A stretch of DNA of 64,000 bases from Eutreptiella sp. 'Long Island Sound 2002' (Eukaryota; Protista; Euglenida), in the NCBI GenBank assembly GCA_964036045.1, contig OZ038378.1, positions 9,982,001 to 10,046,000 of the forward strand. Direction: 5' to 3'. The notes beneath the pieces are model-generated. The model made no database searches. It worked only from the letters and a program-made list of their open reading frames with translations, and was not told where the DNA came from. Positions within the stretch are counted from its first letter, which is position 1. Every line of letters begins with the position of its first letter. This document shows, piece after piece, positions 18,501-64,000 of this stretch. Position numbers and translations under genes: made by a program.

Positions 18501-21500
18501 CCCCACCCCATTTGGGGGGTTCAGCGAAGGAGGCGAATCATGGAGCCCGTCCCTCCATTCATGTCCTTTCCCTCCTCCCGCTCCCGCACCCCCTGCCACT
18601 ACTGCGCCCAGCCTGTGAATCTGATCCAGACCCTGCGCACAGTGCCCCGGTGCATTTCGGCATAACTTACGCACATCTTCTTGGGCGCACCTTTCCAGAG
18701 GGGCCTCCCCCCCAGCCCCCACCTGCATCGCGTTCGGCTTTGTTCTGGGGGAACAGACGGTTCCCCCATTCGTGGGCGTTGGCGTGTTTCATGCAGAAAA
18801 ATTCTGTCCGAATCGTGAGCACTCGCAGACAGGCGCACGCAGACACGCATGCGTGGAAGACATTGGCTGCGGGGATGTGCGTTGGAGGGGTGGTCAACAG
18901 GCCTTTGCTTAGTGGCTGGTTGATACTATACCGGGGGGGGGGGGGGTCAGAGGCCAAAAAAAAGTTTGTGTACCTAAAATCGACCTCCAAGTTCGGGCCC
19001 CTTTGATAAATTTCATTTTTCTCCTGAGGAAAAATTTTCTGATGTGGGTGGGTGGGTGGGTCAGCCAAAATCCCGGAGGGCCAATTTGACCCCCCCCCCC
19101 CCCCCCAGTATCACTAAGCAAAGGCCTGGTGGTGAAACCATTGCTTGGGGAGCATGCCCAGCCTCATGCGCAGCAGCGGGCGGGTACTGCGAGCCATTTG
19201 TGCAGTTTTGTGGTTTTGTGTGTCTGGGGAAGGCGTGTTCCGGACTCCTCTCCTTTGGTGTACCCCCGGGGGCCGCTACGCCGTGGCCTGGGTGGCGGTG
19301 GGAGCACTGCACGGCACCGGGTGCGCAACACACGCAGTCCCGTTGACCACGTTCTGCCGTGCGTCACAGAGCCTCGCCCCTGAACATCGCCATGGACAGT
19401 TACCAGAGCTTCACGGCGCGCATGGTCTGCTCCCTCATGCAGCACCAGGAGCGGGTCCCCGGCACCAAAGTGTTGGAGCAGACCACCGCCCCCTACGAAC
19501 CCCCGACCCCTTGGCCCACGAGTCCCGAGCCGCTGCTCTCCTTCGCCCCGAGCACTCCCCCCCCACCCCCGACGTCCGCGCAGACCGGGACGGATCCCGC
19601 CGGCACCGACAACAGCCAGCCCCCACCCATTGGAACCTCAAAGTTAGTGCCGACCGCCAGCCGCGCGCCGCGCCGCGCCCATAGCGCACCCCCCCCGATC
19701 CCGAAACCTGCCGCGCGCGCTCTGCCTGGCGGTCCTGCGGCGGATGTGGGCGACGACAGTGCACACCTGACGTACATGCACTGCCACACACTGCCCCCGC
19801 AGCCGCTGCCGTTCACCTGGGCCCCCATCCAGCGCTCCCCGCACCCGCTGCCCTCGGTTTGGGAGGCCCGGCCCATGTTCGCGGCACAGCCCCGCGGCGG
19901 GCCCTTCACGGAACTGCGGAACACGGTGCGCTGCAACGACCGCGACAAGACGATCCAGTGCCTTGAGGAGCTCAAGTCGGACCCCTCGATCTTGGCCCAG
20001 ACGGACTCTGCGGGGCAGAACCCCCTCCACTGGGCCTCTGTATTCAACAACCTGACGTTTTTGCAGATGGCGTATGAGTTGTTGGGGCGTTCAGGTGTGA
20101 GCAGCGGGGGGTCTCTGCAGGCGACAAGCCCTTGGGTCTGTTGTGGAGGGGTCCGCTTTGGCAGTCGGTTTGCGGACGGCGGTCGGCGGCCGACCCAAGT
20201 TTGTTTGTGGCGTGCCTCATGGGCATCCTTGTGTAGCGGAAAGTGCGATTCGAGGTCATCAGATTGCAGGGGCGTGGTCCCGCATGCAACCAAAGCTGCA
20301 GTGCACGGTCCGTGTACCCTCAGCACCCCCTGTACCCGTTGTAACCCACTGTTACCCCTGTCCTCCTGTACCCCCTTTACCCCCCGTACCCCATGTGGGA
20401 TGTAGGGTGTGGTCTATGCGTACAGGGCTGCAGTGCGAGTAGCGAGGCGGTTCACGTGCAATACGCCAACAGAATAGGGAAGTGTGTGACCAGGGAACAT
20501 TTGAAAGATCATCGATCGGAAATCAAAAGTCACGCAGTCTGTCATTCCGCTTCGTAGCCTGGCTGTCATTCCTGGTTTTATTTTCCAGTGGATCCCAGCA
20601 GCTTGTTGGTTGGATCTCCAGCCGTTCTCTCCCGCAGTGCTGGCCGTGTTCCACCCTCATTCAAATGCATGGCATGGCAATGCCATCTGCTGCTTCCGCC
20701 TGGAGTTCGAAGTTTGTTCCATGTGCATCATCTTTTGTCATGCATGCCTCAAAGTTTGTCTTCGAGACGCATTTCGTTACACATGCACCCAAAATTGTCC
20801 GTGGGGGTGGAGGAGTTGTTCGGGGGGTGGGGGTTCGACACCCCATTTTTCGATCGCCAGAGGTTTTTTTTTACGAATTTTATCGATTTTGCTCCAAAAA
20901 GGTTTTCCGGTCCCAGGTCCGTGGGGCTCTGGCTCTTCCTCAGGCCGGCCGTGGCCCGTTTGAAATCACTCTTTGCACTGAAAACAGGGTCAAAAGTAAG
21001 CAAGAGTACAAATCGTTGAAAGCAGGTTTTAGCCTCGACAGTTCAAAAATCCACATTTCCAAGACCAAGTTTTTTGCTACTGTGGCCAGTCACACTGATT
21101 CAAGCCAGTTTTGAAGTGGGCATGCGTGCAAGGGAAGGGAGCCCCCGCATCCCCCGGTGAGATTCCGTTCCAGCCGCTTCTGTCCGCCCCCAACCGCCCA
21201 CCAACCGTTGCGCAACCGCCCAAATTTGCTCTCCAACCATTTCCCCCCCAGCAGCTACCGCTTTGACCCCCTCTAATAACACCCCCCTCCAGCCCCTTGC
21301 CCGTACACCTGCAACGGACCCGCCCCTGCCCGTTGCCTCTGTCCATTGCGCCCCCCGCCTCAGTGGAATGGTTCAACCAGAAGGACAACAACCAGCGCAC
21401 GCCGTTGCACTTGGCGGTGTGGAACAACCACAAGAACTGCGTGCTGTTCCTGCTGTCCATCAACGTCGACAAGAACGCCCAGGACAAGGGCGGCTACACG

Positions 21501-24500
21501 CCGCTGTACTTCGCCGTGTACCGCGGCTACGAGGCCATCGTGCTGATCCTGATGGAACACCACTGCGACTGCACCATCCCGTCGTACATGCAGGAGAGCC
21601 ACCTGACGCCCCTGAACCAGGCCTGTGTGCTGGGGCACACCACCGTCATCCGGCTCCTGCTCGGGCTGGACAAGCGCACGCAGCACTTGCTCGTGTTCTG
21701 CCACCCGATGCAGAAGCACAACAGCCGCAACACGGTGGTCCAGCGCACCAGCCCCCAGCACACCCCCGACGACGCCGCGGGCTTCCCCACCGAGACCCCG
21801 GCGGCGGAGCCGGTGTCCATCGAGAAGCGGCTGGAGGGGTACGTGAACGACCCCGACATGAACAACAACACGCCGCTGATCTCTGCCATCCGCAACCGCC
21901 ATCTGGAGGCCGTCACGCTCCTGCTGCAGATGCGGGCCAACCCGGCGTGCACGGACAAGCACGGGGACACCGCGCTGCACATTGCTGTCAACGGGTCCTG
22001 CCTCCCGCCCCCCCATGCTCCCGCTGAGGCCTGCAGTGGACTGGCTCATGGTGCCGGACCCCCCCCCCCTCTCCTGGCCACGTGTTACAAATCCCCACAG
22101 CAGCAGTGGAGGGCACCCTCCACGGGGGGGGCCGTCTCCTCGGTCCGGGTACGCGACTCCCCCCCCCCCCCCTCCGGGCCCTCCGGGCCCACTTAGTTAC
22201 CAAGGGTCAATGGCTACTAGCCATACATAGGGGGAACGTTAGCGCGCCGGGCGCGCGCCGGGCATCTTTTTGGACCCGTGCCCCACCGGTGACCTTTTAG
22301 GGGGTGCGCTAAGGGGGCGCACTTAGGACAATCTTTGAATCCACGCTTCGTTGTATGGTGCATCATGGTGACCCCCGGCATAGGTTTTGACTTCCGATTT
22401 TGTTCCCTTTGTTGGGGACCCCCGAGAATGCAGGGGTGATGTAGCATTTCCGCCCTCTTTTGGGCCCCAACCGTCCGGTGCTATTGAGGAAACCGGGACA
22501 ATCTTTGAATCCACGCTTTATTGCGTGGTGCATCATGGCCCTCCCCAGGCAGGGGGTGTGGGCGCCTACAACCACCTTTGCATTGGTGAGGAGGTAGAGT
22601 GGAGGCCTCCGTTGTTGTAGAGTAACCCCTTAGGCCACCGCGTCTCTGCCAAACTGAACTAGACCTCTGCTAACCCCCTCCCCTAGCCCCCCTCCCCCCC
22701 CGGCAACTAGCAGCGACTAGCAAGTCCCTTAGAGAAGCCCTCCTCGGCGGCTAGCCCCCCCCCCCAAAAGCCCCCCCCCCCCCCCCCCCTAGGGGCCTTC
22801 GGCCCACTTCTGCTGGGGGGGAGAGTCGCGTCTAAAAGCGAGGAGACGGCCCCCCGGTGGCACCCTCCCTTCACGGTCTCAAAATGACTGAATGCGAAGC
22901 CTGTCAGCGCTGGAGTTGGAGCAGTCTTAAAAAAAAAATGGGGAGCGGATATTCCGCCTTCACCCACACCACTACCCCCCCCCCCCCCCCCTGCAGCTCC
23001 ACCAACGCCGCACCAACACCGACACCAACAATGGCGGAACGCGCTCACCCATGCAACAACAATAGAGGGCAGCCCAGGACAGCAAAGGACAGCCCAGAAA
23101 AGACGCCCGGGGCACTGCGGACCCTGGGTGATGAGCCAACAGACTCTTTACAGGGGAGGGGGGGGAGGCCGCGGACTCCTCCCTCTCCCCAACTGCGGGG
23201 ACGCGTACGAAGGGGAACTAGCCCCGGTCCCGAACCCTTAGACTGAGGGCGGGCGCTATGTGCATGGTCTACCACCGCCGCGTCAGCTAAGGCCATCATG
23301 CCAGCAAACAGCATGCAACTACGCCCAGGACAGACTGGGATATGTGGGCCAGCAGAAGCAAGTGGCCGAAACCACCCACATTAAGCACACTGACACCAAC
23401 AAGGAGCCCCCTTGAGCCAGGATCTCCCTCCTCAAGGGGAAGGAGGGGGCAGGGAGAGACGAACCCACTCCCACCCCCCCTCCCCCGCCCCCTCCCCTAC
23501 CCCCTCCCTACAGCAACACGCACCCCCGCCACCCAATGCCCCCCAGGGCAGAAAGAATGGAGAGGGCAGGGAAGAAACAGGGCAGGGGAAAGGGACGAAC
23601 CAAGGAGGGTAACAGGGCAGGGCAGACCGCGCTCGCCGAAAATGGTGCAGAGCGCAGAAGGGGAACAAGGAAAGGAAAAACGGGAAAAAATCATTGTGGT
23701 TGTTAGAAGCCCCTGTCAGGAAAATTATCCTGCAGATGCACACCCCAGCGCGCTCAAGTCAGTGCTGGAGTCGGCAAACCCAGCATGGACTCGGAGTGTG
23801 CATCTGGATGCACCTGGTCAACGGCACGGGCAACAGCCCATCTCCGGGACAGCCGACCCTGGAGTAGTCAAACAGGACAAGTCATCCAGGGGCTCCGTTG
23901 ACACGACCAAAACACGTTCGGGCCCACAGAGGGTCAGATTGAGCAGTGGCGAGAGGCCAATAGGCGCCGCCAAAGGCAAACAATCAGATACCGAGGCCTT
24001 GTGCCAACCCCCCCCCCCTCCTCCTGCTGACGTCTGACTGACAGCTACTGACTGCGATTGTCTGACTACCTGTAGGCAGACATGATGTTCTGGTTTCTGT
24101 TTCACACACAGTGTGTGTCTTGAGGTTTAACCAGGTTTGGCACAGAGAATAGAGATGCACTGATGCCTTACTGTGGGGTGCATTACCTCGGGTTTGCACT
24201 TGTCTGTTTTTTAATTGCCCCCCCCCCCTCCATTCTAAAGCAAGGTTGCATCCACTGACCTACATTCACCCGCCACCGGCAGGGTTCAGATGCAGTCATT
24301 CCTGGACAGCGAAGTTCAGGCGGGGTCCATACAGGATGGCAGGTTGACGTGCAGTACCACCGGACGTCCGGTGCCATGTCCGTTGTATGCCCTGCTTTGG
24401 TTGGTTGGGGGCAGTTCTGGGAGGAGGGGGGTCTGGTCTTGCCCTTTGGGGGGCGGAGGCCTGTTGGATCTGGTGTGCTGCCTTTTGTTTGTCTGTACTC

Positions 24501-27500
24501 TTCTGTTGTGACAGAGGTAAAGGCCCGTGGGTGGCGGCAACATCGCCCGGCATGAAACCCCCAAAAGTCATGAAATGAGCATTTGTGGCAGTATCACGGT
24601 GACAGCGGGGTTTCCCTAAGGGGCATCGGTAGCCAGCCATATTCTTGTGACATTGCAATGGATCTATCTAAGCGTGTTTCTCTTGTGGCTGACCTGACCT
24701 GACACGAGCGGTTTCCAAGGAGGAGGGTTACCCCTCTGCCCAGACATGCATTAGAAGAAAAAACAAAAATGCCACTCTCACCCAGGAAACCGCGCACTTC
24801 TTACCGCACTTTCAATGGGGGGCACAAAAACATGTTCTCTAAAGCCCGTTATGTGCCAGATTCAAAGAGGGTTACCGAGTCTCCCCGGCCGAGTCTCCTT
24901 GAATCTGGCACTCCACGGGCTTTGGAGGTCATATCAACAGTGGCCCCTCGCTATGCTGGGGTGATTAGTTGGCAACACTAACCCTATTCCCTTCAATAAT
25001 GTGTCCACATTGAACCCCACGGGGCCTGGCACCCCCCAGGACGGCCCCAGGGGGGGCTTCGCCCTCGGAGGGGGGCCAGAGTGCGCATATATGCGCACAT
25101 ATTATATGAATAAGTCGCAGGCAGTCAAGGCCAACCGTCAGCGCTGCTGCATGTATCCCCTGTGCCCCTTCAGTGCGCTGGAAAAGTTTGTTGACAAACT
25201 GTTGGAGGCCATGAAGGACAAAGAGGAGCTCTTGAAGCGAGTCAACAAACGTGGGGAGACGGCTCTAGACGTAGCCCTGGCGAATGAGGAGATCACCATC
25301 GCCAAGAAGCTGCAGCAGTACGGTCTTGCAGAGCACGAGGAGACGCCTGAGTACACATGTCTGATATGTTCCAGTCTATTATATGAGCCGTGCACGCTCA
25401 GCTGTGGGCATACCTTTTGTATGTACTGTGGGACTGCCTCTGTGAAGCCCGAGACAGGGGGTCTCTGCCCCTTCCGGTGCAATATCAGGACCACATCAAC
25501 GCCGCAGAAGAACCTCAGGATCGAGAAGGAGATCAAGGAGAAATATCCAGAGCACTTCCAGCGGCGCGAGGCGGCGTTCTTCAAGCAGCGGGCCAACGCG
25601 TGTCTGCAGGACTTCGCGCGGGTCATCAACCCAGGCAACCCTCTCAAGTTCAATGAGAACAACACGGTCCACATCACCCACGAAGACATTGATTTGCGGG
25701 TGACGCTTCTGCGGCGGGAGCTTTACGTGTACCACGTGCTGCATAAGGTACTCTCCTGTGCACGTCTGCATCTGTTGTTGGGGCAGGATGTGGTGTGGGG
25801 TGGGGTGTGCTTTAGTGATGGCAGGATGAGCTTTGTTTCTGTGGCGAAAGCGTTTGCTTCAACAGCGGCATCAACGGCCCTGCTCAGGTCAGGGTCCGGT
25901 TTTTGAGGATGGGTTGTGCGTTAGCTTCCCGGTGCCATTGCAATGCAGGGACTGCCCCCGGACGACAAAAAGGAGACCAAGCTCAAGATGCTGACCATGA
26001 TCTTGGAAGGCAATCTCCTGGGCTCCTCCTGCTGCAGCGGGGGCATCACCATACTGACCAACAACGAGATTGTGCTGCACATGAGCGTGCAGCTGTACAT
26101 TGCCAAGCCTCCGGCACTCCGCGAGGTCATCACGGTGTTTGCCAAGTGCGCCAAGGGCTGGCATCGCCACCTGCAGGCGGTCCTCGTTGATGAAGACCCC
26201 TCGCAATGCGAGCCCATCATCAGCGAGTCCCCCGCACCATCATTGATGTCCGAGCGCGTGGGGGATTTCGAGAAGGTCCCCCTCATATCCCCCCCCCCCC
26301 TCCTGCCCATCATTCTGCCGCTACATCCTCGCTCTCCCTGCTTGCTGCCGTCCCTTGCCATGCCTTTCTGCCACAACCCTGTGCCATCAGGACCACATAC
26401 GGAGGGTCACATGTGCTAGGAGGGCCCTGTTGTGGGGTGGCTGTAACCTGCAATTGTCGAGGGAGAGGCTGCAACACACAATTGCAGTGTGGTGGTGGTG
26501 GCTGCAGGCCTTGCACCAGCATTGTACCGGCGCTTCCAAGAAAAATGGACCTTGGCAAAAGCGGCCCATGGTTTGCCAGGTCCCAGGAAATTGCGCAAGC
26601 GTCAAAATGGGTGGTGGTGGTGGAGGGGGTTTGCCATCTCCTCATGCCCGCTCCCCACCCGCTCCCCAAAACTGGGGTATTTGGTTTGGTTGTTTGAGGG
26701 GCTGGTGCAAATTTGACAATAATTTGGGGGGGATATTGCTGACTCATGAATGCACAGTTTCATTGCAAAAAGCATAGCTACACCCTTGAAGTGTGCCACG
26801 CAATTGCCTGCCACCTCAAAAACACGACTCCTCCAGAATTTTCCCAAAAGGATTGCTCCGCTTGCCCTGGCTTTGTGAGGTGAGTGCTCATACATTTGTT
26901 GGCTGTTGATATTAAGGGAAGCACGAACTGGTTTTCGGTGGCATTGGGGCCCTGTGGTGCAGAGGGGTGGCGTTGGTGTGATGTGATCCCACGAACATGG
27001 TGGGAGGCAAAAGGACATGTTTCGCGGCTGCTGGCCTTTCCAAAAGGGCTGGCCGTGGCCCTTTTTGACAGGCACGAAATCCATGCTTGCCCCGTTCTTC
27101 TGAGGAAAACTTTGTGTTGTCTCATGGAAGTAGTTTTGCGCTGGGGATCTGTGATGCCCTCCCGGAGGGGTGGGGTCGGTGATGTTGTGATGCAAGAAGC
27201 ATGGTGGGATGCCCCAGGATGACTGGAGTCCCACCTGCAGCAACGCAGCGAAATTGCAGTCTGCACCGAACTGGGGGATTTTTCAGCCCACGTGCCTAAA
27301 ACATGGAATCTTCCAAGGGTATTGTGGTATTTACACCATCTGCGATGATGAAAAAAACACCTTTGCGGCCCGTTTTGAACTATGTTTGTACGGCTGAATT
27401 TGACTCTTTTGGTCAAGGAAGGGGGGGAGGGGGGCTTGTGGGGGCATCTCAGCAGATGGCCAGCAGATGGATGTCAGATGGCTGGGGGCATCTCAGTTTG

Positions 27501-30500
27501 AACATGAGATTTTGTTTTTGGTCTTGTCAATTCTGTACCTGTTTTGTTTTCATCATGACAGTACAAAGTGATCAAACAGCAGTTGTAGAGCTTGGTTCAC
27601 ACTTCTTTTTGCATTGTGTTGATGCAGTGTGCTGGGACACAAAGTAGGACACGTTCGGCCATGTGACTCCAGCTGTATCGTGCATCCCCCACCCCCCGGC
27701 AAAGGGAAGGACAACAGAGTGTCAAACAAATAGATGAATATTGAGGTTTCCAAAATGGATTTTGTTTCATTTCTAGGCTCTCAAAAACAATCAAAAACCA
27801 CCTATAAAGTTTTTTTTGCACTTCTTTTGCATTGTGTCCATGCATTTTGGTTGCGAGACATGGCAAAGAGGGGGGCATTGGCAGTTGAACCCAGGGCCTT
27901 TCATTCAGCCCCAGGTGGTCACAATTCAAATCACCTCGAAGAGAGGTTGTTAGTGCGGGCGTGGGCACCATCGTTTGCATAGCTTACCCCAATGGGTGAC
28001 ACCAGATGTCTGACCCCTTGTAAAATCATCATTTGGGAGAGAAAATGATCCCCCAATGACTTTTTTTGATTTTGACCCCTCTACTCCCTGTACCCGGGGG
28101 CCACTTCTTTTTTGGGGTGCAGGGTTGGAGGGGTTCCAAATTTTTTTTGCGTTGTGGCCATTGTGTGTCAATTTAGACCTTGGTCCTGAATAACTTTTTT
28201 CCTTTTCATGGACCCCCTAACCAATGGTGAACCCTACCCCAAGGGATGGGATTTTGGTTTAATCCCTTGTAAAACCATTATTCTGTCCAATAGACACATC
28301 CCCCAATGAGTTTTTGGTTTGGACCCCCGTTGCCCCCCCCTCCCCCCAAATTGTCGCCCAGGACATTTGGGTTGGTCTTGTGTGATCATTTGGTGACAAT
28401 TGGGATTACGTACAAACACATGGGGAGCCATGTAGCACCACCGCGAATAGGCCCCAAAAGGGGGGGCTATGTGGTGTTTTCCCATGTTTGCGGGCCTGCA
28501 TGGTTTTGATCTAACAACCTCTGCAAGTTGATTTCCAGCCGGCCAATGCCAACCTGAAAACGGCAAAGTCCTCACCATCAGGGGCCCACAGGGGGGTCGA
28601 CTGGGGGCACCCAGAGTTCAGACCCAACTAGGCCCTCTTAGTGGGACATATTGGCCCACGAAGGCCTGGGCATGTTTGCATTGTAGTGGGCAAAACTTGG
28701 TTGGCGCCATTGTGTGTTAATTCAGACCTAAGTCCATCTCATTGCACTTTGTTCTTCTATATGAACCCCTCACCAATGATGGGGGTCTCGGGTGTCATCT
28801 CAAATTTCCTAGACCGCCCCCCCTATGGGGCCCCCAATTGTGAGCACTTCACTGTTTTTAGTCGCCATGTGTTAGCTGAAAAATTGCGATTCTTGGGTGA
28901 CCTTTGACAACCCTTGGGGACCCTTGGGCTTTTGTCGGGTGATAATTTGGTGACAATCGGAGTGTGTGTAAGCCCATGGGGAGCCATGATGCTGAAGGAT
29001 GATGGATGGCTGCAAAATCAGCCACTTGGAGGCCCATTGCTTGAGCCAAATCTTGTGCGAGGTGGACATGCCGAAGGCAACAAGATTTTTTACATTATTG
29101 CTTTTTCTGAAATCCTTAGGTCGCCTCTAGGATGGATTTGGGTGATTGTTTGCTGACAAAATTGGCAGCCCAAGCCCATGTAGCCCAAGCCATGGTCCCC
29201 CTAAAAGCCCCAAAATTGCTGTTTTTGAGGCTGTTACTTACCCTCAACGTCACTTGTCTCTCTTTGGGTGCCTTGCCAAACGCAATAGAATTTTTCTACA
29301 AAGGTTGCATGCAAATTGTCAGTGTCATACAATCGTAGGGTGGCTGTACACGACAGCCGTTGAGGGGGGACAACAAGATGCCATTGAGAGTGGGAAGGTG
29401 GGGCGGCTGTGTCACCCGCTTGTAGAGATTATGTTGTGACAGACAAGGATGGGGAGTGGTAAAGGAGGCTGTAGCTTGCAATTGTTGGAAGCTGAGGTTG
29501 GTTGTACTCGCAAGGTCAGTGGTGTACCCTTCCAAGGGGGTGCGTATTCCCGGGTATGTGGGATGGCATGCTGCCAGTCACGCCTTCAAGCAGGGGGAGG
29601 GAGGTTGGTGTGTGACCCTGCAAGGCCAAAACAAAACAAGAAAACATAGAACATAGATGTTCTGACATCAGTCAGAACATCAGTTAGATGAGGATGAGGA
29701 TGAGGATGACACCGACAATGATGATGAATTTGATGACTGGTGCATCAGTTCATTCGTCCTCTGGACTGATTCCCTTAGCTGAACTGCCCCAAAGTCAGTC
29801 AACTTTCTTATGACACACTCCCTTGTCCTTAGTGGTGACCCTGAGTCGATGGGCACGGCATTTCTTATGGTACAGGGCAAGAGCAGCATCAACAATGTAT
29901 TGCAGCCGTGGCCCAACATCCTTTGATAATGATAGGGCTAGGAATTGGCTACATCTCCGCTAGCACATCAGGCCCGCTGCAATAGGAAAGACAGAAATAG
30001 GATGAGGTCATTTGACAATATGAACTTCTTATTGTGATCCAACCCAAATTTGGCACCAGAAAGTGTTTTTCCAGCTGCTTTCTTAGGGGGGGGGTGGGGG
30101 GGGGCGGGGGAGAAGTTTGAAGGCGGGTGGAATGTAGGAGCCCGAATGAAAATTCGTTCTGAAGCGCATTCGCACCCCCCCTGCCCCCCAACCCTGCTGT
30201 AAGTGCTGGTTCAATTTTGCCCGGGGGTGGGGGGGGGGGGGGGCAACTGGGTCAAAACTAGGTTCTCCTTGACAAAACACAATTCTTGTCCTCCCAGAAT
30301 GGATGTTCGATCAACGAAGATGGGCAGTGAATGGGAAGTGACAATTCTGTGTTTGTGTACACCGGATGAGCTCTTGTACCCTGATGGTTCAGCCTCATTT
30401 CCTCGTCCCATCTCCTCCCTGGGTCAATTGCTCTGCCCGTCATGGTCACAGCGACCGTGGCGGCGGTTTGCTCTGGGGACAACCATTTAAGGGGCCTCAG

Positions 30501-33500
30501 CTTTGTGATGATAACGATTCCCCCGTTTTCACATGCTCCATGGATTTTCCTGGTTTGGGGTCTGTCATTGAATGACGGTGCGTCTTGACAGAAGGCAGGG
30601 GCCCAGAGCTGTTGACCCACAACACAGGCCCTGCACAGTCTCTTGTGCACTGCCCTCCCCTTCCACTTCCTGGTGCCAGCACAAGGCTTCACTGTGCCTG
30701 TCTCTCACCGGGTTGCGGTCTGGCGGTGGCCATTGGCCCCAAGTGCCATGCAGCGGAGCCTGAAATACCCTGATAGACCTGTTTGGCTGTCTCAGTGCCA
30801 GTGGGTACTTCATCATCGGTGTGGTGGTGCGGCATGCATCAACCCACTTCGAGGTGCTTTGCCAAAGGCAACATTTTTTGGGGGCATTTTTGATTCCGAA
30901 CCAAGGAAACGCTTTCGGCTTCGAAGTCACTGCGACCTCCTCAGGCTGGTATGGCGGGTGGGCTGGACAGTCAAACCAAACAATATGCCCAGTACCGGAA
31001 ATTCGTTTCCTCCTCCGCTCCTTGAGACTGAGTTATCGCTTGGCATGCCTCCGTCCCGCTCTCTCAGGCCCACCAAATGGTGGATTACTTCAAGCAGAAC
31101 CTGCACGTCAGTGACCAGCAGAATCTGCACTTCGACAACAACAAGACCTGGCACCTGAAGAGCGCCCGCTTCCAGCTCAACATCACGTACGAGCACCGCT
31201 CCGACTGCCTGTACGTGTTCTCCCCGGTTTGGAACGGGCTGCCCAAGCGCGATGAGGTGAAGTTGGTGTTGTATGAGAAGCTGCTGCGCCTCAACCTCTT
31301 CTTCACCGACCTCCCGGGCGCTGGGGTGGGCATTGACACCCACGGCGACTTTGTCCTGATCCACATTGTCATGCAACTGGGGAACGTGCCCCACACGCTG
31401 CTGCACGACTGCACGAAGCTCTTCATGAGCCAGATCGACCGCTGCATCCAGAGCGTCAACCAGACCATCAGCGACCCCTCACGTCGGTCCCGCAAGCCCT
31501 CCACAAAGGTGGTTTGTGTCCATGTGCTTTACCCCCCCAGTGCCCCTGCGTTCGTGTGCCTACCCACAGCCTGCCCCTGTGTTCCTGAAGCTGATATTTC
31601 TTGCTCGCCTGTTCATGTTTGCACCAGATCTCATGTATTAGTTTGCTGCTGCTGGGCCCACGTTGTGCCCAAGTCAACCCCAGTTTCAGAAGGCAGTGCA
31701 GGCTGTGTAGGATCCATCGTGCCCCCTAAGTTTGCGTGCCACAGGTTCCCCCCTCGACCGGTGTACAGGACAGCAACCCCGCTCCGTTACAATTGCATGT
31801 TACCCCCCCCCCCCGCCCCCCAAACACTGTCAACTGTACCACAGCCACACACGACACCAGCAGGTAGGATTCCGCCACCCCCCCCCCCCCCCGCTCCCAC
31901 CCATACCACCAAACATCCAACCCTACCCACCCGACGAATGCTTATGATCCACCCCATCCCACACCCCGGTCCCTGCGTGCCCCCCCCTGTGAATCTAGCA
32001 ACCCGCACAAACGGGTTAGGCAGTGGGGCAGTGGTGGTGGAGGTATTCGCACTGTAGGATAAGCCTGGGAACCTGACCCCCCAGTGCCCCTGCGTGCATG
32101 TGTCCACCCTCCAGTGCCTGACCCCCGGTACCTCTGTCCATGTGCCTACGCCGAGTGCAGGGGCACCGAGGGGTCAGCACATGAGCACAGGGGCATTTTG
32201 CGGGGCAGGCATCACCAATGATATGAAGGATGTGTGTCGGGGACACAAATCACGCGAACACGGGATTATGCGGTCCGAACCCACCCATTTGACCCCAGAA
32301 CTGCCAACTGCTGCACCGTGTGATCCATAAAAGCCGTCATTTGCTCGTTTTTCGACATCGACCCTGGCGTTGTGGCCGGTGGTGGGGGGGGAAGCCCACC
32401 GTTTCCGACGCCTTCGTATGGGACATGGTGTTGGGGAACCAGGCGTGTAACTGGGGTAGACGTGCCCTGTGTCTTGCCGCGTACCCGTGCCCTCGTGTGT
32501 GTGTGCCGTGTGGGTTCCAGTGCACCCCCAAACACGTGCGCAGGAGGAAATCGAAGGCGTGTGGGGCGTCAAGGACAACCTGCGCGTCGTGAAGGAGCGG
32601 GCGGCGTTGTCGTTGTGCACGGGCATGACCCCCAGCGCTGAGGAGGAGCGGGAGGCCCTGGTGATCTCGCAGTTCTGCCAGCACCTGGGGGACTGGATCG
32701 AGGAGCGGGCCACGCAGCAGCTCAACCACTCGCCCTCGCAGTTCAGCCCCGTGCAGCTCAAGCTGGCGCTGTGCATCGGCATCAGCAAGTACAGCGGCGT
32801 GCAGACCGGGGACGCCAGCCCCCGGGAGCTCCCGGGCTGTGTGGAGGACGCGGTGTTCGCCGCACTGACGTTTCAGAAGTTGGGCTTCCACGTGCTCTCG
32901 GTGCTCAATGAGAGCGCCACGACGGCCACGGTCATGCATCTGCTGAACGCTGTGCGGGCGTGCGCCGAGGGCCGGAAGCTCGCGGCATTTGCGCTACACT
33001 TCTCGGGCTACGGGGCGTACCGTGTCGTCGATGGCCGGTACCAGGCCACACTGCTGACGCACGACTGTGACGAGGTCCCGGCAACCCCCATGTCATGCCG
33101 CATGCTGTGTGGGCACGGCTCTTCCGGGGTGTTTGGGCAGCAGCCCTGTTGTTGTGACGTGGTGTTTGCCTCCGTGGGCCCGGGCCTTCGCAAGAGCTGC
33201 CCGGCTGACTGCAGTGCCCCCTCCCCTGCGCATCCCCCCTACTCCGAGAGCACAATGACCCCCATCTGAAAACTTCGACTTGGCGTATGTAAACACACAG
33301 GATCATGCAGCAATCTCCATAATTCAGAACAATGCATCGAAAAAGAAATGAAGTTTCTGTTGTAGGAAGACCTAGGTTCAAATCCCAGCTCGGCACTGTT
33401 TGGCTCAGTGAAGGTTGGGTGATACATTTTTGGTTTTCATTGCAGAGCACCCTTACTTGGACCCCCCTCTTTTGCCTATCTCCCTTGTGGAAAAGTGGAA

Positions 33501-36500: not shown

Positions 36501-39500
36501 AATGGCAGTATGCAGGGTCACCCTCTCCAACCTGCCCAATGCGCCCCCGTATTCCCTGACAAAAGCCCTGCGCTGCCTTCAGGGGATTCCGATCCACATA
36601 CTGAAGGCCCTCAGCAACTTCTTCATGGAGAAGGACGTGCAGACCGTGCACTTCATTCTGGACTGCGACTTTGCTTGCCGCCCCTGCGTTGGCAACCCCA
36701 AGGACCCCCACCTCACGCCCCGCAGCAGCCACAACTTCACGTGGGCCCGGCCCTCGGTGTTGAGTGACCGCAAGTGCTACCCGTCCGCCGGGCCGCACGA
36801 CCCCGTCCAGCCCCAGTGGCTGGAGCACCAGAGCAACGCTGTGAGCCAGGCGGCGGGGTCAAGCTGCGGGTCCGGCGGGGCGGGGTGCACCGAGAACTGC
36901 GACGTCTCGCTCATGCGGGAGTGGGGGACGCTGCGCCCCCACATGTGGGTGATGGCGGCGTGCCACTCAGACGAGCGGGTGCACACGTGCACGGCCAACG
37001 GGTGCGTGCTGGGGCGGTTCACGTACTGCTGCTACAGCACTCTGCTGGGCACCTCCGCCAGCCACCCGGCCCCCATCCCAAGTGAAGAGCGCCGCCCCAG
37101 TACCGACGACGTGGCGACCGGCGGCGGGGCTCGGGGGGCGTTCGGGGCGAAGGAGCCAAGCCCAACGAAGGCGCAGCCGCACATGGACGAGCCCCTCCTG
37201 CCGTCCGGCAAAGTGGTGCTGGAACAGCTGGCGCTGGCTCAGGAGCACGACGGGATGCTGGCGCTGAAGCTGCCGCATCGGGACGACAAGAAGCGTGCAG
37301 TGGACGAGGACCTGCGCCTGCGGATGCAAAACACCACTGCGTTCAAGAAGTCGCTGGCGTCGCTGTTCGATGACATTCGTGTGGCGATGCGGTACAATAG
37401 CTTTGCAGGTGTGTGCCCAGCCTCACCACGGACTGACCCCCCTGCCAACACTCCCGTCCGCAGCAATTGGCCAAGGGTTCTGGGCAAGTGTTAGACATCG
37501 GTGGTATGCAGTAATTCCAGGTATTTGCCGCCGGCCTTTTTTGAAGAAGCACCCACACCCAAGGTAACACCCTGGGTCAATAACTGGTGCGGTCGGCCGG
37601 GGGGGGGAGGGGTGCCATTGCAATTTTGGGTTTGGGATTGGGGAGAGGGAGGGTTCCATCATGAAGGCAGAAACGGCACAAAGCAGGCACTACTGCATGC
37701 ACCGAAGAGCAAATGAGCGGAAGATACAGCAGGAGCAGTTTCTGGATAAAGGCCAGGCTTGGGTTGCCAATGCATTGACAAAAGATCCAGTCGCTGGGCT
37801 CAGACAGTGCCGTCTTTTGTTCTACCCAGATGCACACCCCGGGTGCGGGCCCGTGCAGGGTGGGCTGTTCTCTGACGACTCCACCCTACAGCGATCCATC
37901 CGATGGCTCTTCCGACCAAACGTCTTGCAGCCCTGACTGTTGCAACCGTCACTGCTATTGAGCCGGACCTCCTACATCCATTCCGTGAGGTAGGCTCTAT
38001 GCCTGACTGTGCGCTGCTGGTCAGTAAGCCTGGTCAGTCAGCCTGTTCATTCCCAAAGATGCCAATATCAACCCTCCCCCCCAAATTGGCCTTCGGATCC
38101 CTGTTTTGCACCCAGTTTCACCCATTTTCACCCATTTTTTGCTCATTTCCACCACATCCACTCCTTTTTAGGTTGATTTCTCCCCACAATGGGGACCCCA
38201 AGAAGGCAGGGGCTATGTAGCCATTCTGCCCACACGTGGGGGGGTTAAGCAGCCACTACCGCTGTCAGGTTCCGATGAGCTCCAGCCTGCAGCTGATCCT
38301 CCGTGCTGCGGGCGGCAACAGTTGGGAGGTTCCCAGTTGAAGCTGCAGGATCCAGAGTGCATGGCAGTGCCCACTCCTGTATTCATCTCCTGTTTTCATC
38401 CTGTATTCCTGTGGTCATTTGGGATATCGCCGGGGCAGTGGCAGCCTATGCACATTGCTGTGCTGTCTTGCTGGTGACAAGAGAACTGGCAGCCCTTGCA
38501 GCCCTAACACAAGGCATGCAAGAATTGGTGCTTCAATGTGAGATGCGCTCCAGCCCCCTCCCTCTCCCTCCTCAAGACCAGTTTCGCCACCTGATGAAAT
38601 AGTCCCGCTGGTTATCTCAATCAAGGCCTTGTTTGTTCGAATCTGCCTCAGTACATGACAATCCCCCCCCCCTTCCCGGTCGCATGTCGGTAGGTGAGTG
38701 GGTGGGTGGGGGCAGGGCCTGATTGGCCCCTCCCCATGACCTCTATCTTTCAGCAAAGGCCCGTTCTTGTCCTCCCCATTTGCTAAGCACCATGGCTGCC
38801 GTGCACGTGCCTTGCACTGCAGGGGGCGGCCCCGAGCAGAACCCGGTGCTCATAGCACAGCCCTACACGTGCCGGTTCAAGCCCTTCGACATGGACAAGC
38901 CACTGCTGAACGAGATCGCGGAGGAGACGTACAAGTCTTACCCGCGCCCGTGCCCGCAGCGAGGCCTCGTGGTGGCCGCCGGGGCGCTGCACGGCGTGAC
39001 CATGGGGCAGGTGTTTGGCGTTGCGATGCTGGACAACTGCCACGAGGAGCTGTGCAAGGCCGTGGTCACGGCCGTGCAGGACGCACAGTCCACGCTGACC
39101 CCCGTCGGGGACACGTCAGGGCTGCAGCCCCACACGTCGTACCACATCATCGAGACGTGGGACGTGGACCCGACTGTGGCGCTGCACACCTCCGGCAACG
39201 GGACGGAAGGGCACGACAGTGACCTCCCGCTGACGGCGGTGATGGAGCGCAGCATCGCGGTGTCACTGTGCTCGGATGCGGTACAGCCCAATCCCCGGGC
39301 TCGCTGCCCCACGCTGCTCAACCAGAGCCAGCTCAAGGTGTGCCGTTCAGGAATTTCATGGCGTTGGTTCAGGATTGTCCGGGGCATTCAAACGACCCAA
39401 ACAACGCCATTGCGGCCCCTTACGAGGCCCCTAAATTGTTCCGCAGAACACAGAACACAAGTACATATGGCAGTCGCGATGTCCATGCAACCCTGTGGAG

Positions 39501-42500: not shown

Positions 42501-45500
42501 GACGCAGCGACGCGAGAGCCGCCGGAGGTAGACCTCACGTGGCTCCTCAGGCGCCCCTACTCATTTATCCCCCCAGTGCCCTTCCGCGACCAGTGCCAGC
42601 TCTCCCCGACGGCGCTGAGTGACTGGTTGCAGGACCGGGCCTCCATACCGGCGCAAGCCATCTACGAGGCCCGCTGGGGGGTAAATTTCATGCCAGGGGG
42701 GGGCCTCCCCCTGGACTGGTTCGACCACGACCAGCAGCGCCACGTCACGGCGCATCGCATGGACAACGTCCCGACCATGACCGTCCTGGCCCACCGTTCC
42801 TCCCACCGGGGCACGGTGCTGGATACAACGTGCCTCCTGTGCGGGACACAGCCCGAGACGGCGCCCCACCTGTGGGCCTGCTCGGCTCAATCGCACGAGT
42901 GGGGGCCAGCCCGCCGGCGCCTCGCAGCGTGGCTTGACCAGAAGGTGGGGCCACGGGCGGCCCCAGTGCGTCACCAGCTGTGGGAACCGACTGTGCTGGA
43001 GCAGTGGGCGGCAGCCCTGCGGACCCCCTCCATGCAGCTGGCCCACCTGGAGTGTACGGGGCCCCACTCGCTGGGCACGGAGTTCCTCCGCCACGTCGTG
43101 GAGGAGTCCTTACGGATCTGGTACGCCCACGCCAAGGCGCGTGCCACACTGCTGAAGGCCCGCCTGGGCCCGGGCAGCACGATGGCGTGGGCGTTGCAGG
43201 AGCTGCGCCTGCACCAGCAAGCAGAAAGGGAAGGGGTGCAGCGGGAGCTCCTGGAATAAGCGCGGTCGCCGGAGGCGAACTCACCAGGTCTCCCCGACTC
43301 CCCCTTCCCCTGCCGAGGCCAACACACTTACGCACGGCGCGCACACAACACACACAGCCCAGCCCGTTTACCTTTACCCGTGGGTAGACATCCCGGCCTT
43401 TTGCCCTTTGGTAACAGCGCCTTCGGCACACCACACCACACCACACCACACCACACTATACCACTGTTTTCTGCAGTGCCTGGACCTGCCCCCTGGACAC
43501 CCTGTGCCCACTGCCCACCGCAGTGCAGCAGTGTACTGAAGGAGAGCAGGGATGCCGATTTGCCTCGAATTCAATTTGAATTCGAGCGAATTCGTACCAA
43601 ATTCGAAATCATGCGAATTCGAGCGAACTTGATTCCAGTAGAGTCAAAATGAGAGTTTGTAAATGATTCCTTCGAATTTGAGCGAATTGATACCAAATTG
43701 GAATTCGTGTGAATTCGTGTGAATTCAAACCTGCATCCTTAAAGGAGACTCACTGCCCATTACAGCGTGCAGTGCAGTGCAGCAGTGTTTAGGAGGAGAC
43801 GCACTGCCCACTGCCCCTTGCAGTGCGGTGGTGCACTGGAGAATGCCGACTGCCCACTGCCCCGTGCAGTGCAGCGGTGTACGGAAGGATGCCGCCCACT
43901 GCCCATTGCCCCGTGCCATGTGGCGGTGTCTAGAATGAGGCCCCTTGCCCACTGTCCCGTGCAGTGCGGCAGTGTACTGTAGGAGACCCACTGCCCACTG
44001 CGCCGTGCAATGCAGCGGTCTCTAGAAGGATATCCACTGCCCATTGCCCTTCACAGCGGTGTACAGAATGATGCCCACTGTGGCCCACTGCCCACAGCGG
44101 TGTGGCGGTGAGCAGGACACACCACTGCCCACTGCCCACAGCAGCGGGACAGGGAACAGAAGGAGCTGCCATTGTGCACTGCCCACAGCAGGGCGGTGGT
44201 GGACAAAAGGAGACGCTGCTGCCCATTGTGCACAGCCATGTGACCGTGTACAGAGGGAGGTGCCACAGCCCGTGGCCCATGGCATCACACCACACCACAC
44301 CACACCACACCACACCACACCACACCACACCACACCACACCACACCACACCACACCACACCACACCACACCACACCACACCACACCACACCACACCACAC
44401 CACACCACACCACACCACACCACACCACACCACACCACACCACACCACACCACACCACACCACACCACACCACACCACACCACACCACACCACACCACAC
44501 CACACCACACCACACCACACCATGCAGCACACTGCACCGTAGGAGCCACAACGGAAACTGAAGATATGGTCGGCGTCGGCTTAGGAGAGGCTGAAAACCT
44601 TGGATACGGTCTGCTCTTCAAACCCATGCGCTGTGCCTCATCACCTCTGTCGCGCCTGGTGCTGCCAGCCCCCACATCCCATTCCTCTCGCATTCTCTCC
44701 GTCCCACTGTCCTCACGCGCACACAGGCCACCATGCGGCAGCTCATGGGGGAGCACGCGCAGATCACCGCCCGCCTGCAGGAGCTGGGGAAGCCCCTTTC
44801 GCCGTACTACACGGACTTCATCACGGGGCTTGTGAAGCTGCGGCCGGTGCTCACGTCAGACCGGCGCAGCTACGACGAGTACTCCATCAAGTGCTGGCTC
44901 ACGTGGTTCAAGAGCTCCCCCGTCACAGGCCGCACCCTGAACCACATCGCCATGCGGGAGGACCGGGACACGCGCGAGATCATTGCGGAGCACCTCGCGG
45001 GCTGCGGTGTGCAGGGCGTGCCGGCCCACCTCTGCGCCCTGCCGCACTCCGCCCGCCGCGCAGATGAGAGCGACGAGAGCATGTCGGACTCCGAGAAGAG
45101 CGACAGCGCCGAGCGGGCCCCGGCCGATCTGATGAAGGACGACGACGCGGTGGACGGCCCTCAGACGCTGTCCCAGCGCCTCGTGCAGCTGGAGGATGAC
45201 TTTGGGCTGTCGCTGAGGGAGCGGCTTCGGCTGCGGCACCTATTCGACTTCCACTGCCAGCATGCCCCGCGGAACCAGCACCCGCCTCCGCCCCCGGACT
45301 TGACGGTGGATGACGTGTTGCTGAGGACAAAGCCCAATAAGCGGTACGCGGTCCCCCATGCTGCACATCGGCCCCCCGCCCCCCGCCCTCAACTGCCCCT
45401 CCCATGCCAACTCTAACCCCCGCATATGACTCCAGCCGCCCCTGCCCTTCACCCTCACCCAACGGTCACGGCAACCAAGAGGCCTGGGACCGGGCCAGGT

Positions 45501-62400: not shown

Positions 62401-62958
62401 ACAAGCTGTGCCACACACTGCCTCACACATTGCCCACACCGCCCGGTACTACCCCACACACCGCGCCACTACGCACAGCCCCACACACTGCCACCACTCG
62501 CTGCTACCACCACATACTGCCCCCCACCCTCCACCACCATCCACTGCCGCACACACTGCAACACATATTGCCACCATACACTGACCCCAAAAGTGCCGCA
62601 CGCACTGCCCCACCCACTTCCATCACACACTGCCCCACCCACTTCCATCACACACTGCCCCACACAACGCCAAATATCGCCACCACACGCTGCCACCACA
62701 CTTTGCCCCACGCATTGCCCCACGCAGGCCCACACACTGCCGCCGTTGACTGCCCCACACACTCCACCACCAGATTCCTCTACTTCGTTTTCAGGCACTG
62801 GGGGCGTCGTGGAGATTGAGAAAGGGTTCCTGAGTTGGAACGACTGCGAGACCGACGAGACAGTAATGCTTGAGCATTTCAAGCTTTTCTTCTGCAGCAC
62901 AGACTGCAGCCCCATCGGCCTCATGCGCCACTACACGGAGGAGACCCCTCGACAGCAG
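59173..62958 (+). CDS. Further probable exons of the same gene (~59173-59324, ~61979-62222, ~62795-62958); link to 58853 unresolved
   Basis: GC3-rich open frames with cag|...|gt borders; 62222 to 62795 is phase-1 compatible (TVFQG|TGGVVEIEK). The phase between 58853 and 59173 could not be reconciled. Confidence 0.5.
59404..59602 (+). repeat. (GT)n microsatellites
   Basis: Directly visible at 59404-59438 and 59557-59602. Confidence 0.95.
60130..60210 (-). other. tRNA-like pseudogene or SINE head with Pol III A and B boxes
   Basis: Minus strand GGGGTTTGCTCAGTGGTAGA (A box) ... GAGTTCAAATCCC (B box) at tRNA-like spacing; the stems do not pair properly. Confidence 0.5.
61550..62770 (+). repeat. 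CA-rich degenerate repeats (cacagcac; cacactgcccc) in introns at ~61550-61920 and ~62280-62770
   Basis: Directly visible low-complexity periodicity. Confidence 0.8.
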
Positions 62959-64000
62959 GGTCAGCGGGTAGATTGGTGCTCATACTCCCTTACATTCCGC
63001 CTGCAGCCTGACCCTGTGGATGCATGATTGCAGCCCCACACAGCCGCAGGCGTAGCTGCGTACCCAAACACAGATAGAAACACAGATATAGACACAGACA
63101 CGGACACGGACACATCTCTTGTGCTTGACTTCTCCTTCCTGCCATCCACTTCTCAGGGCTGCCAACCGCACGGCATCGCTTTGTGGCGTGGGGTGTTACA
63201 GTGCGTAGTGATGTATCTGTGGCATCCTGCCACTCGCCACCACACTGAGTGTAACTGCAATAACCAGTTCCGATTCAGTATGTGTGTGTTGATGCCTCAG
63301 GCAGCGAAATGCATGACCTGCTACTTCTCTTGCCCGGATTTTCTGCATTGTTGCCCATTGTTGTTGTGCCATGCAGTCCCCCCCTCATGCACCACGCCCC
63401 TTGGTACCATGCCCCCATTCCCATGCACCATGCCCCTGAGCATCCTACCGCCCATATCATACTGGTGACCACTCAAGGAAGTGCCCCACTGCGAATGTGT
63501 GTCGCTCAATGGGGCACTTCTGGTGAGACGATTGCGTTGGAAGGTTTCAGGGCACTGTCGCAAGGGAGGGCAGGGGCTCGGGGGGGGGGGGGGACCGCAC
63601 ACTCGGAGGAAAGGGCGGCTCTTTTCGTTTCCTCGCTGTTTTCGTCCTCATCCGGTCCGCCTGCAGGCCAGCCCCATGGGGGGTCCTTGATTCCATCGCA
63701 TGGCACAGTGCAGCACCAAACTGCTGGTGATGTGAGGGAGGGACAGGGAATGATGATAACCAATGATTAATCAGGAGGCCTCTCTCATGCCGGCGGGCCC
63801 CGGTGTCAGGCACAGGGGCCTGCCTTGTTAGGACCATAGGCCCTGTGCCATCATCCCAGGACTGCCGGGGCTGGTCATCAGTCAACAGTCCCCAGTCTTG
63901 GCAGGCTGTGCCTTGCCACTTGGGGAGAATCCCCCCCTGCCCCGCCCCCTTCTCCTCTTGCCCTTGGTCCATGTGGAGATCCTTTCGGCTTTCAGTCGGA

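Follow-up and report, generated by a model that had tools for sequence, protein, structure and literature searches.

Class I chaperones of bacterial type III secretion systems are homodimers that hold the chaperone-binding region of effectors, or extended polypeptide segments, on the surface of the dimer. CesT-like domains have also been described in eukaryotes, in trypanosomatid proteins with the architectures UBL-CEST-PDZ and UBL-CEST (Durante et al., 2015, PMC4472858). TCLP1, which has the first of these architectures, is found in Trypanosoma cruzi at the flagellar pocket, and endocytosis is reduced when it is over-expressed; the CEST domain was proposed to derive from Chlamydiaceae by acquisition, and the family was stated to be restricted to trypanosomatids (PMC4472858). 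For Leishmania, copies appear only in the form of annotations (PMC7105377, PMC6247020), TriTrypDB using the description 'Tir chaperone protein (CesT) family', e.g. for LINF_040012200 (PMC7105377). Here, we analyse a stretch of 64,000 nucleotides from the euglenid Eutreptiella sp. 'Long Island Sound 2002' (contig OZ038378.1, positions 9,982,001 to 10,046,000, forward strand; hereafter the window), which carries a gene with two CesT domains in tandem. A previous inspection of the letters and open reading frames (ORFs), the sequence-only reading, had suggested that this pair acts as an integrated decoy for bacterial effectors. Our analysis leads us to propose instead, with a probability of about 0.55, that the pair would serve a giant E3 ubiquitin ligase as its module for binding clients or partners, built as a single-chain chaperone dimer.

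Identity and expression of the CesT domains

Two full-length CesT-family domains lie on the forward strand of the window, at 25571-26200 (with a 201-nt intron inside) and at 31077-31490; they are referred to as CesT1 and CesT2, or as D1 and D2 where domains are compared across the family. CesT2 matches the Pfam CesT profile (PF05932) with 35.2 bits against a cut-off of 22, and with 38 bits in a six-frame search of the whole genome (2.28 Gb), while the C-terminal half of CesT1 taken alone gives 18.1 bits over profile positions 52-118. An independent hidden Markov model (HMM) of 138 positions, built from 72 CesT-like domains outside the ankyrin-RING family to which the gene belongs, recognizes both domains: spliced CesT1 scores 79.6 bits (positions 2-136) and CesT2 scores 106.9 bits over the whole domain length. 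Compared with one another after splicing, the two are 33% identical over 87 aligned residues (pairwise E of 3e-9). The mutual similarity and the motifs described in the sequence-only reading are therefore real, the motifs lying in the forward ORF pieces 25001-25906, 25943-26419 and 31077-32057, and its assignment of the domains to the CesT or type III chaperone family is borne out both by these profiles and by the fold of a homologue discussed below. A sequence search of the PDB with CesT2 returned only Tll0839 (2PLG), at an E of 0.21, and NCBIfam held no name for CesT2 or for its chlamydial homologue.

Expression was assessed in four estuary metatranscriptome runs (X1-X4), available as assembled contigs from which transcript level and transcript ends are unreadable. 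The runs contain 7-13% of the words of window 25000-33300. Contigs placed on 25560-31559 cover the predicted exons with zero mismatches; the splice junction 26275->31068 (GT..AG, 4,792 nt skipped) occurs in contigs of all four runs and the junction 25747->25949 in a contig of X3, and contigs of X1-X3 depart from the window at 31509 and continue elsewhere. From these junctions it follows that both CesT domains are adjacent in one spliced, expressed mRNA, and that the domains are split by genuine spliceosomal introns, as had been supposed. The CesT sequence is eukaryotic, spliced and transcribed, and is not a chance match.

An artefact, be it bacterial contamination, two separate genes or a dead pseudogene, is exceedingly improbable. 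Nothing beyond the bacterial affinity of the CesT family speaks for it, and it is refuted by the mismatch-free junctions in the RNA of four runs; the GT-AG introns, one of them within CesT1, the frames that are open throughout, the full-length collinear match to homologues and the presence of a paralogue on another contig of the genome all stand against it as well.

Layout and conservation of the gene

When full-length homologues are compared with the window by tblastn, they match collinearly from 19.9 to 63.0 kb, and 19,875-63,027 (+) is assigned on this homology to one euglenid nuclear gene of ~43 kb for a giant multi-domain protein of ~1,800 aa. The order of domains is ankyrin repeats, C3HC4 RING, CesT1, a conserved linker, CesT2, pseudo-caspase, a U-box-like domain and a C-terminal β-sandwich.

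A phmmer search with the CesT2 exon against 1.84 billion representative proteins gave 86 matches at E <= 1e-3, the best being proteins of 1,678-2,057 aa and a 795-aa transcript of Euglena gracilis (P0002) with two Pfam CesT stretches (64.1 bits). Pfam finds ankyrin, RING and a pair of CesT stretches in the homologues; two of these proteins also have a U-box, at about residue 1,250-1,300. The named sources are E. gracilis, the heterotrophic euglenid Entosiphon sulcatum and the diplonemid Flectonema neradi, the others being located on metagenome contigs; the ankyrin-RING-CesT-CesT layout is shown by these proteins to be conserved in euglenids and diplonemids. The source genome itself has a whole-gene paralogue with more exons (contig C5:15408543-15434373, -). 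P0002 is 47-67% identical to the window gene and 57-80% identical to this paralogue, which is thus the closer of the two to the E. gracilis transcript.

Three homologues on metagenome contigs are encoded in uninterrupted ORFs. P0005 (1,982 aa) lies on a gene-dense contig of 22% GC, where it adjoins a NIF phosphatase gene and a DHFR-TS gene; the clusters closest to the latter come mostly from Nucleocytoviricota (giant-virus match 0.96), and this single contig is probably that of a giant virus. The full-length homologues P0007 and P0003 are found on apparently gene-dense contigs of 76% and 68% GC, respectively, among neighbours that include kinase, caspase, HNH, SNF2-helicase, SET and Macro genes. 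A protein-cluster search of the neighbours on these two contigs was uninformative as to a bacterial, viral or intron-poor eukaryotic source. Searches for related loci with P0007 and P0005 in viral contigs, and with one family alignment in metagenome and viral contigs, found none, and a shared-word search for homologues with region 390-695 of P0003 returned only the query.

Fold of the CesT pair

The tandem was modelled with AlphaFold2 (AF2) on the E. gracilis homologue (P0002:452-760, 57-62% identical to the window domains) from a 12-row alignment. The model has a predicted local distance difference test (pLDDT) score of 82 and a predicted template-modelling score (pTM) of 0.81, and each half adopts the arrangement α-β3-α-β2-α. 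Foldseek places it with the secretion chaperones ExsC, SchA, VecA, SycH, SicP, SycT, CesT and SycE at template-modelling (TM) scores, by target, of 0.7-0.85. In VIA-align, D1 is closest to ExsC (Z of 12.8), STM2138 (12.1), CesT (11.9) and SicP (11.8), and D2 to VecA (14.0) and SycT (12.4). These fits have a root-mean-square deviation (r.m.s.d.) of ~2-2.5 Å over 113-131 residues; overall, Z ranges from 10 to 14 for type III chaperones, with YbjN-type proteins at ~9 and ARPC2 at 5.5.

A pTM this high in a chain of two domains suggests that D1 packs against D2 in a defined way. When D1 and D2 of P0002 were submitted as separate chains, the complex prediction fell into the class 'weak support', with a score of 0.54 against 0.00 for the best of three controls, a contact agreement between runs of at least 92% and a partner pLDDT of at least 68. 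In its calibration, this test passed 51 of 78 solved complexes and two of 108 mismatched pairs; only five of the 78 solved complexes, but all four passing mismatches (of 180), had scores at or below 0.60, the range in which our score falls. These models suggest that D1 and D2 may form an intramolecular pseudo-dimer in place of the bacterial class I homodimer. The single-chain pseudo-dimer of the sequence-only reading is thus weakly supported: the pTM of the tandem chain agrees with it, and the separate-chain prediction adds a weak indication in the same direction.

The linker between the domains (window 26201-26275 plus 31068-31076) keeps the motif S-E-x-P-A-P ... R-x-G-D ... K-A in euglenid, diplonemid and metagenome members, and is modelled in P0002 at low confidence (pLDDT of 52-61). 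Such a linker may mark a site of regulation or be bound in cis. The latter idea belongs to a different view of the pair as a structural or autoregulatory module, either a rigid scaffold or a device that holds a segment of its own protein, such as this linker, and keeps the ligase closed until it is activated. We regard this view as unlikely. It would account for a motif that is conserved family-wide and yet modelled at low confidence, and it has a eukaryotic scaffold precedent in ARPC2 of the Arp2/3 complex, which is matched over the whole length by Foldseek and, with a Z of 5.5, by VIA-align. However, the ARPC2 matches are weak (TM of ~0.24, r.m.s.d. of 18 Å), the fold binds other polypeptides in every studied relative and no evidence was obtained for a linker seated in the groove.

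Phylogeny and origin

A maximum-likelihood tree was calculated from 90 CesT-like domains; the columns behind it are few, and many of its forks are unresolved. In it the D1 domains of the ankyrin-RING family group in one clade, with a support of 100 in the SH-like approximate likelihood-ratio test (SH-aLRT), and the D2 domains form another (SH-aLRT of 96). Each clade holds euglenid and metagenome copies, and that of D2 also a diplonemid copy; from the separation of the two clades it follows that the duplication into D1 and D2 took place before the family spread and before euglenids and diplonemids diverged.

D1 and D2 fall outside a clade of 35 single-CesT proteins from Discoba (SH-aLRT of 99), here called TCLP-like. 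This clade includes Diplonema papillatum KAJ9463981.1 (UBL+CesT), proteins of Namystynia, Artemidia, the euglenid Notosolenus and the jakobid Andalucia godoyi, and Trypanosoma melophagium KAH9601581.1, a CesT+PDZ protein annotated as 'Tir chaperone protein (CesT) family'; a PDZ or a UBA domain is present in further members. The source genome has a single-CesT, TCLP-like copy of its own at C10:17156748-17157002 (-), 48-60% identical to the Notosolenus, Diplonema, Namystynia, Trypanosoma and Andalucia proteins.

These relationships bear on whether the window protein might be a trafficking adaptor like TCLP1, in which case it would help to sort membrane cargo in a ubiquitin-dependent manner, at the flagellar pocket or reservoir, and the CesT pair would bind the tails of the cargo. 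The shared domain, the common lineage and the flagellar-pocket location and endocytic over-expression effect of TCLP1 (PMC4472858) favour such a role. The exclusion of D1 and D2 from the TCLP-like clade (SH-aLRT of 99) argues against it, as does the remaining architecture, which differs and is devoid of UBL and PDZ: Pfam found no match to either domain in the window ORFs or in the full-length homologues. A close functional equivalent of TCLP1 therefore seems to us a slender prospect.

The standalone bacterial cluster nearest to D2 is 36-40% identical to it and represents a highly conserved gene with 466 loci in species-representative genomes, the best 80 of which belong nearly all to Chlamydiota or metagenome-assembled genomes of that phylum (Parachlamydiales, Rhabdochlamydiaceae, Simkaniaceae). 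On these matches a bacterial, possibly chlamydial, origin of the CesT domain is plausible, in line with both the horizontal transfer suggested in the sequence-only reading and the proposal made for trypanosomatids (PMC4472858). The acquisition would be old, given the introns in and between the domains, the host-like composition and the spread across Discoba. The isoelectric points (pI) of the window domains are 8.4 (D1) and 7.3 (D2), within a range of 5.9-8.9 for the ankyrin-RING family, and those of the chlamydial standalone relatives are 4.5-5.1, with one at 6.3.

The best bacterial matches to D2 also include two large proteins with a CesT tandem, P0006 (NB-ARC-TPR-CesT-CesT) and P0020 (DUF7779-TPR-CesT-CesT-OTU). 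P0006 is encoded in a bacterial operon of 37% GC together with other NB-ARC/TPR genes and a Fic gene. Its two CesT domains are sisters in the tree, so that this tandem arose by an independent duplication.

Partner domains and proposed function

The window RING scores 17-23 bits with the Pfam RING profiles, under their cut-offs, with all eight Cys/His ligands (C3HC4) readable; the homologues P0003 and P0009 reach 30.9 and 31.0 bits with zf-C3HC4_2 (cut-off 27). The U-box gives 16.6 bits (cut-off 21.4) over profile positions 3-69 of 73, and the collinear places in P0005 and P0009 give 29.3 and 21.1 bits. Peptidase_C14 is matched in ORF 32469-33269 with 33 bits (cut-off 21.4, profile positions 2-83). 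Caspase and E3 domains neighbouring the CesT pair had been named in the sequence-only reading, and RING, caspase-like and U-box-like domains are placed in the same gene by Pfam and by collinear homologues.

The caspase-like domain is, as judged from alignments, a catalytically dead pseudo-enzyme. The window motif SGYG aligns with SGHG of the caspase-like protein GSU0716 (3BIJ), placing a Tyr at the catalytic His; across the family alignment this position holds Y, N, A, R or no aligned residue, with His absent in all members. The position of the Cys motif is not conserved either (LDCDF in the window; EAEF, DPGL and others elsewhere). No match to NB-ARC, NACHT or AAA was found with Pfam in P0002-P0010 or in the window ORFs tested. 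The idea that effector capture triggers the neighbouring caspase, in the manner of an integrated decoy in a plant NLR, is therefore not supported: the proposed output domain is dead throughout the family, no STAND/NB-ARC module, and hence no NLR scaffold, was found in the gene or its full-length homologues, and the CesT domains are not acidic. The age of the D1/D2 duplication also speaks against it.

A capture role can be framed without these elements. Chlamydiota are obligate symbionts of protists, and the CesT pair might mimic the chaperones of such intracellular bacteria, trapping the unchaperoned binding regions of injected type III effectors so that the RING and U-box could ubiquitinate them or signal immunity. 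The nearest standalone relatives are indeed chaperone-like genes of Chlamydiota; ankyrin, RING, caspase-like and U-box domains are common in immune and death signalling; a conflict between host and parasite would agree with the location of P0005 on a contig that is probably from Nucleocytoviricota; and the bacterial NB-ARC-TPR and TPR-OTU proteins also have two CesT domains. Against this stand the loss of the catalytic His family-wide, the absence of a STAND NTPase and the loss of the acidic character of the chlamydial relatives (pI of 7.3-8.4 versus mostly 4.5-5.1). Moreover, D1 and D2 are kept as orthologous clades in euglenids and diplonemids and are not diversified like typical sensors, and a sister-type single-CesT family persists in trypanosomatids in a role related to endocytosis (PMC4472858). 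On balance, an effector trap appears improbable. Its most specific form, in which an E3 ligase with a chlamydia-derived chaperone pseudo-dimer marks injected effectors with ubiquitin and giant viruses of these hosts captured a copy, strikes us as quite improbable; if true, it would amount to a novel type of innate immune receptor, one copied from the chaperone of the pathogen itself.

We favour the client-binding module of an E3 ligase because in Euglenozoa the CesT domain is repeatedly fused to modules of the ubiquitin system (UBL, UBA, RING, U-box) and because the fold is known to hold polypeptides. The CesT domain would have been acquired from bacteria early in the evolution of Discoba or Euglenozoa and then put to use in proteins linked to ubiquitin, TCLP1 being the one that has been studied. 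In the window protein, D1 and D2 would pack together as an intramolecular pseudo-dimer that holds an extended polypeptide segment of a substrate, and the RING and U-box would recruit E2 enzymes, leading to ubiquitination of the held substrate; the ankyrin repeats and the pseudo-caspase could provide further interaction surfaces. Endogenous or trafficking clients seem to us more likely than foreign ones, and the occurrence of the single-CesT family with UBL, PDZ and UBA across Discoba likewise points to an endogenous, ubiquitin-linked role.

Several points weigh against this proposal. The pseudo-dimer comes from predictions, weakly supportive, that were made for a homologue and not for the window's own protein, and the client-binding role is drawn from the fold and the neighbouring domains. 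The RING and U-box of the window copy score under the Pfam cut-offs. The transcript is verified only from 25.5 to 31.5 kb, the remaining gene model being based on homology. Finally, P0005 on its probable giant-virus contig, together with the bacterial NB-ARC-TPR proteins with a CesT tandem, hints at a role in conflict and not in housekeeping.

Gene model and neighbouring sequence

The segments of the gene are collected in Table 1. Ankyrin matches are weak in the first coding exon and strong in ORF 21297-22196 (Pfam Ank_2, 100.4 bits; Ank, 83.4 bits). The C-terminal domain was modelled with AF2 on the homologue P0003 and shows helices followed by a β-sandwich of ~10 strands (pLDDT of 75, pTM of 0.73). 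Foldseek found no significant match for this model in the PDB, the best being lipid-binding sandwiches of the RhoGDI/UNC119 type (E of ~0.01, TM of 0.3-0.45).

Table 1. Segments and exons of the CesT tandem gene in the window
Feature	Position	Strand	Basis
Ankyrin region	19.9-20.1 and 21.4-22.0 kb	+	Collinear tblastn
RING and CesT1 region	25.1-26.3 kb	+	Collinear tblastn
CesT2 region	31.1-31.5 kb	+	Collinear tblastn
Caspase-like region	32.8-33.1 and 36.6 kb	+	Collinear tblastn
Middle parts	38.8-41.2 kb	+	Collinear tblastn
U-box-like region	44.8-45.0 kb	+	Collinear tblastn
C-terminal domain region	58.6-63.0 kb	+	Collinear tblastn
Probable first coding exon: ATG at 19875, start of ankyrin region, GT donor at 20097	19875..20096	+	N-termini of P0002 (aa 10) and P0005 (aa 3) align
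Ankyrin-repeat exon, boundaries approximate	21362..21994	+	Pfam; tblastn with P0002-P0010
Exon: C3HC4 RING (~25352-25480) and N-terminal half of CesT1 (from ~25571)	25174..25747	+	Acceptor (25172-25173) inferred; donor in RNA
GT-AG intron, 201 nt, phase 0, inside CesT1	25748..25948	+	Sequence; spliced contig of X3
Exon: C-terminal half of CesT1 (to ~26200) and conserved linker	25949..26275	+	Pfam, HMM, alignment
GT-AG intron, 4,792 nt, between the CesT domains, with dispersed repeats	26276..31067	+	Junction in X1-X4
Exon: entire CesT2 (~31077-31490), GT donor at 31509	31068..31508	+	Pfam, HMM, RNA
First part of caspase-like domain (Peptidase_C14), SGYG for SGHG; donor GAG/GT after 33074, upstream boundary approximate	32757..33074	+	Pfam, alignment
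Pseudo-caspase continuation, LDCDF at caspase Cys-motif position, 3' boundary provisional	36583..36700	+	Collinear tblastn with P0005; alignment; acceptor in sequence
U-box-like exon	44802..44999	+	Weak Pfam match; homologues at collinear place
First exon of conserved C-terminal domain	61946..62224	+	tblastn with P0003, P0004, P0007, P0009 (E 1e-5 to 1e-9)
Last coding exon, C-terminal β-sandwich, stop at 63025-63027	62752..63027	+	tblastn (E 1e-8 to 1e-10); ORF end at 63027

A further caspase-like coding region, in which the motifs YAGHS and LDCCHAG look intact, lies just upstream of the gene at 16045-18343 (+). It consists of ORF fragments that have no Pfam match, and it gives a weak tblastn match (E of 8e-4) to an active-looking Peptidase_C14 protein encoded 4.4 kb upstream of P0007 on its contig; a search of the 17 kb that precede the C5 paralogue found no counterpart. 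Homologues of the ankyrin-RING-CesT gene begin with the ankyrin region, and the upstream region may represent either a gene of its own or a 5' extension specific to the lineage.

A peptide-like stretch (...SPFGKAS.RETCPFASHHVRGITS.QRHPSA...) that resembles a dispersed repeat occurs in ORFs at 26602-27416 (-), inside the 4.8-kb intron, and at 16045-16200 (+). High-depth RNA contigs that are 90-95% alike map to intron positions 27.9-28.7 kb. Further downstream, an intron of the gene contains a retroelement-like ORF at 41613-43259 (+), flanked by (CACCA)n at ~41.7 and 44.0-44.5 kb.

Comparison with known systems

A eukaryotic CesT-like domain in single copy, together with its proposed chlamydial origin, is already known (PMC4472858). 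The tandem pair, its conserved ankyrin-RING-pseudo-caspase-U-box embedding and the wider spread of both families in Discoba are new. Our literature search found no paper on the tandem, its setting or the Discoba-wide spread, and nothing relevant on CesT in combination with Euglena or with STAND/NB-ARC, nor on 'secretion chaperone-like'.

The likeness to class I chaperones lies in the Pfam CesT match, in a nearly full-length agreement of the fold, as modelled for P0002, and in the probable packing of two copies of the fold as in the bacterial homodimers. The differences are considerable. The bacterial proteins are standalone chains of ~15 kDa (~130-150 aa) and are acidic (pI of ~4-5), whereas the window domains are neutral to basic and fused within a eukaryotic protein of ~1,800 aa; a covalent, heterologous pair with 33% identity takes the place of a homodimer; and the neighbours are eukaryotic exons and repeats, with no secretion system or effector gene beside the domains.

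Two further systems share the principle of a CesT-type or foreign-interacting domain within a larger protein. The bacterial STAND NTPases P0006 and P0020 also have tandem CesT domains in a large multi-domain protein, but their partners are an NTPase and TPR, their context is a bacterial operon and, in P0006, the duplication is independent. With plant NLR integrated decoys the window gene has in common only the idea of a foreign-interacting domain built into a larger signalling protein; it is without NB-ARC or LRR, the caspase proposed as its output is dead and its CesT domains would mimic a chaperone of the pathogen rather than a target in the host. A role in immunity or conflict is conceivable in view of the bacterial NLR-like proteins, which share the tandem CesT module, and of the possible copy in a giant virus.

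In ARPC2 (p34), a fold classed by SCOP as secretion chaperone-like occurs twice in tandem. The protein is a eukaryotic tandem of this fold and is among the structure matches, but it has no sequence relation to the window domains, is matched weakly (Z of 5.5, TM of ~0.24) and differs in the relative orientation of its two domains.

The TCLP family is the closest eukaryotic parallel, with a CesT domain within a multi-domain euglenozoan protein that also contains domains of the ubiquitin system, and with a compatible chlamydial origin. The window gene differs in having two CesT domains and in their partners, which are ankyrin, RING, pseudo-caspase and U-box and not UBL or PDZ, and the TCLP family itself extends here to diplonemids, euglenids and the jakobid Andalucia, whereas it was described from trypanosomatids only (PMC4472858). 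The window gene thus represents a second conserved and expressed CesT architecture, a probable single-chain chaperone dimer within a giant protein that also has a dead caspase domain and two domains of ubiquitin ligases, and a clear case in which a bacterial virulence-associated fold has been reused in eukaryotic ubiquitin biology. Since E. gracilis has a homologue and is genetically manipulable, it offers a tractable system in which to learn what chaperone-type grooves bind in eukaryotes.

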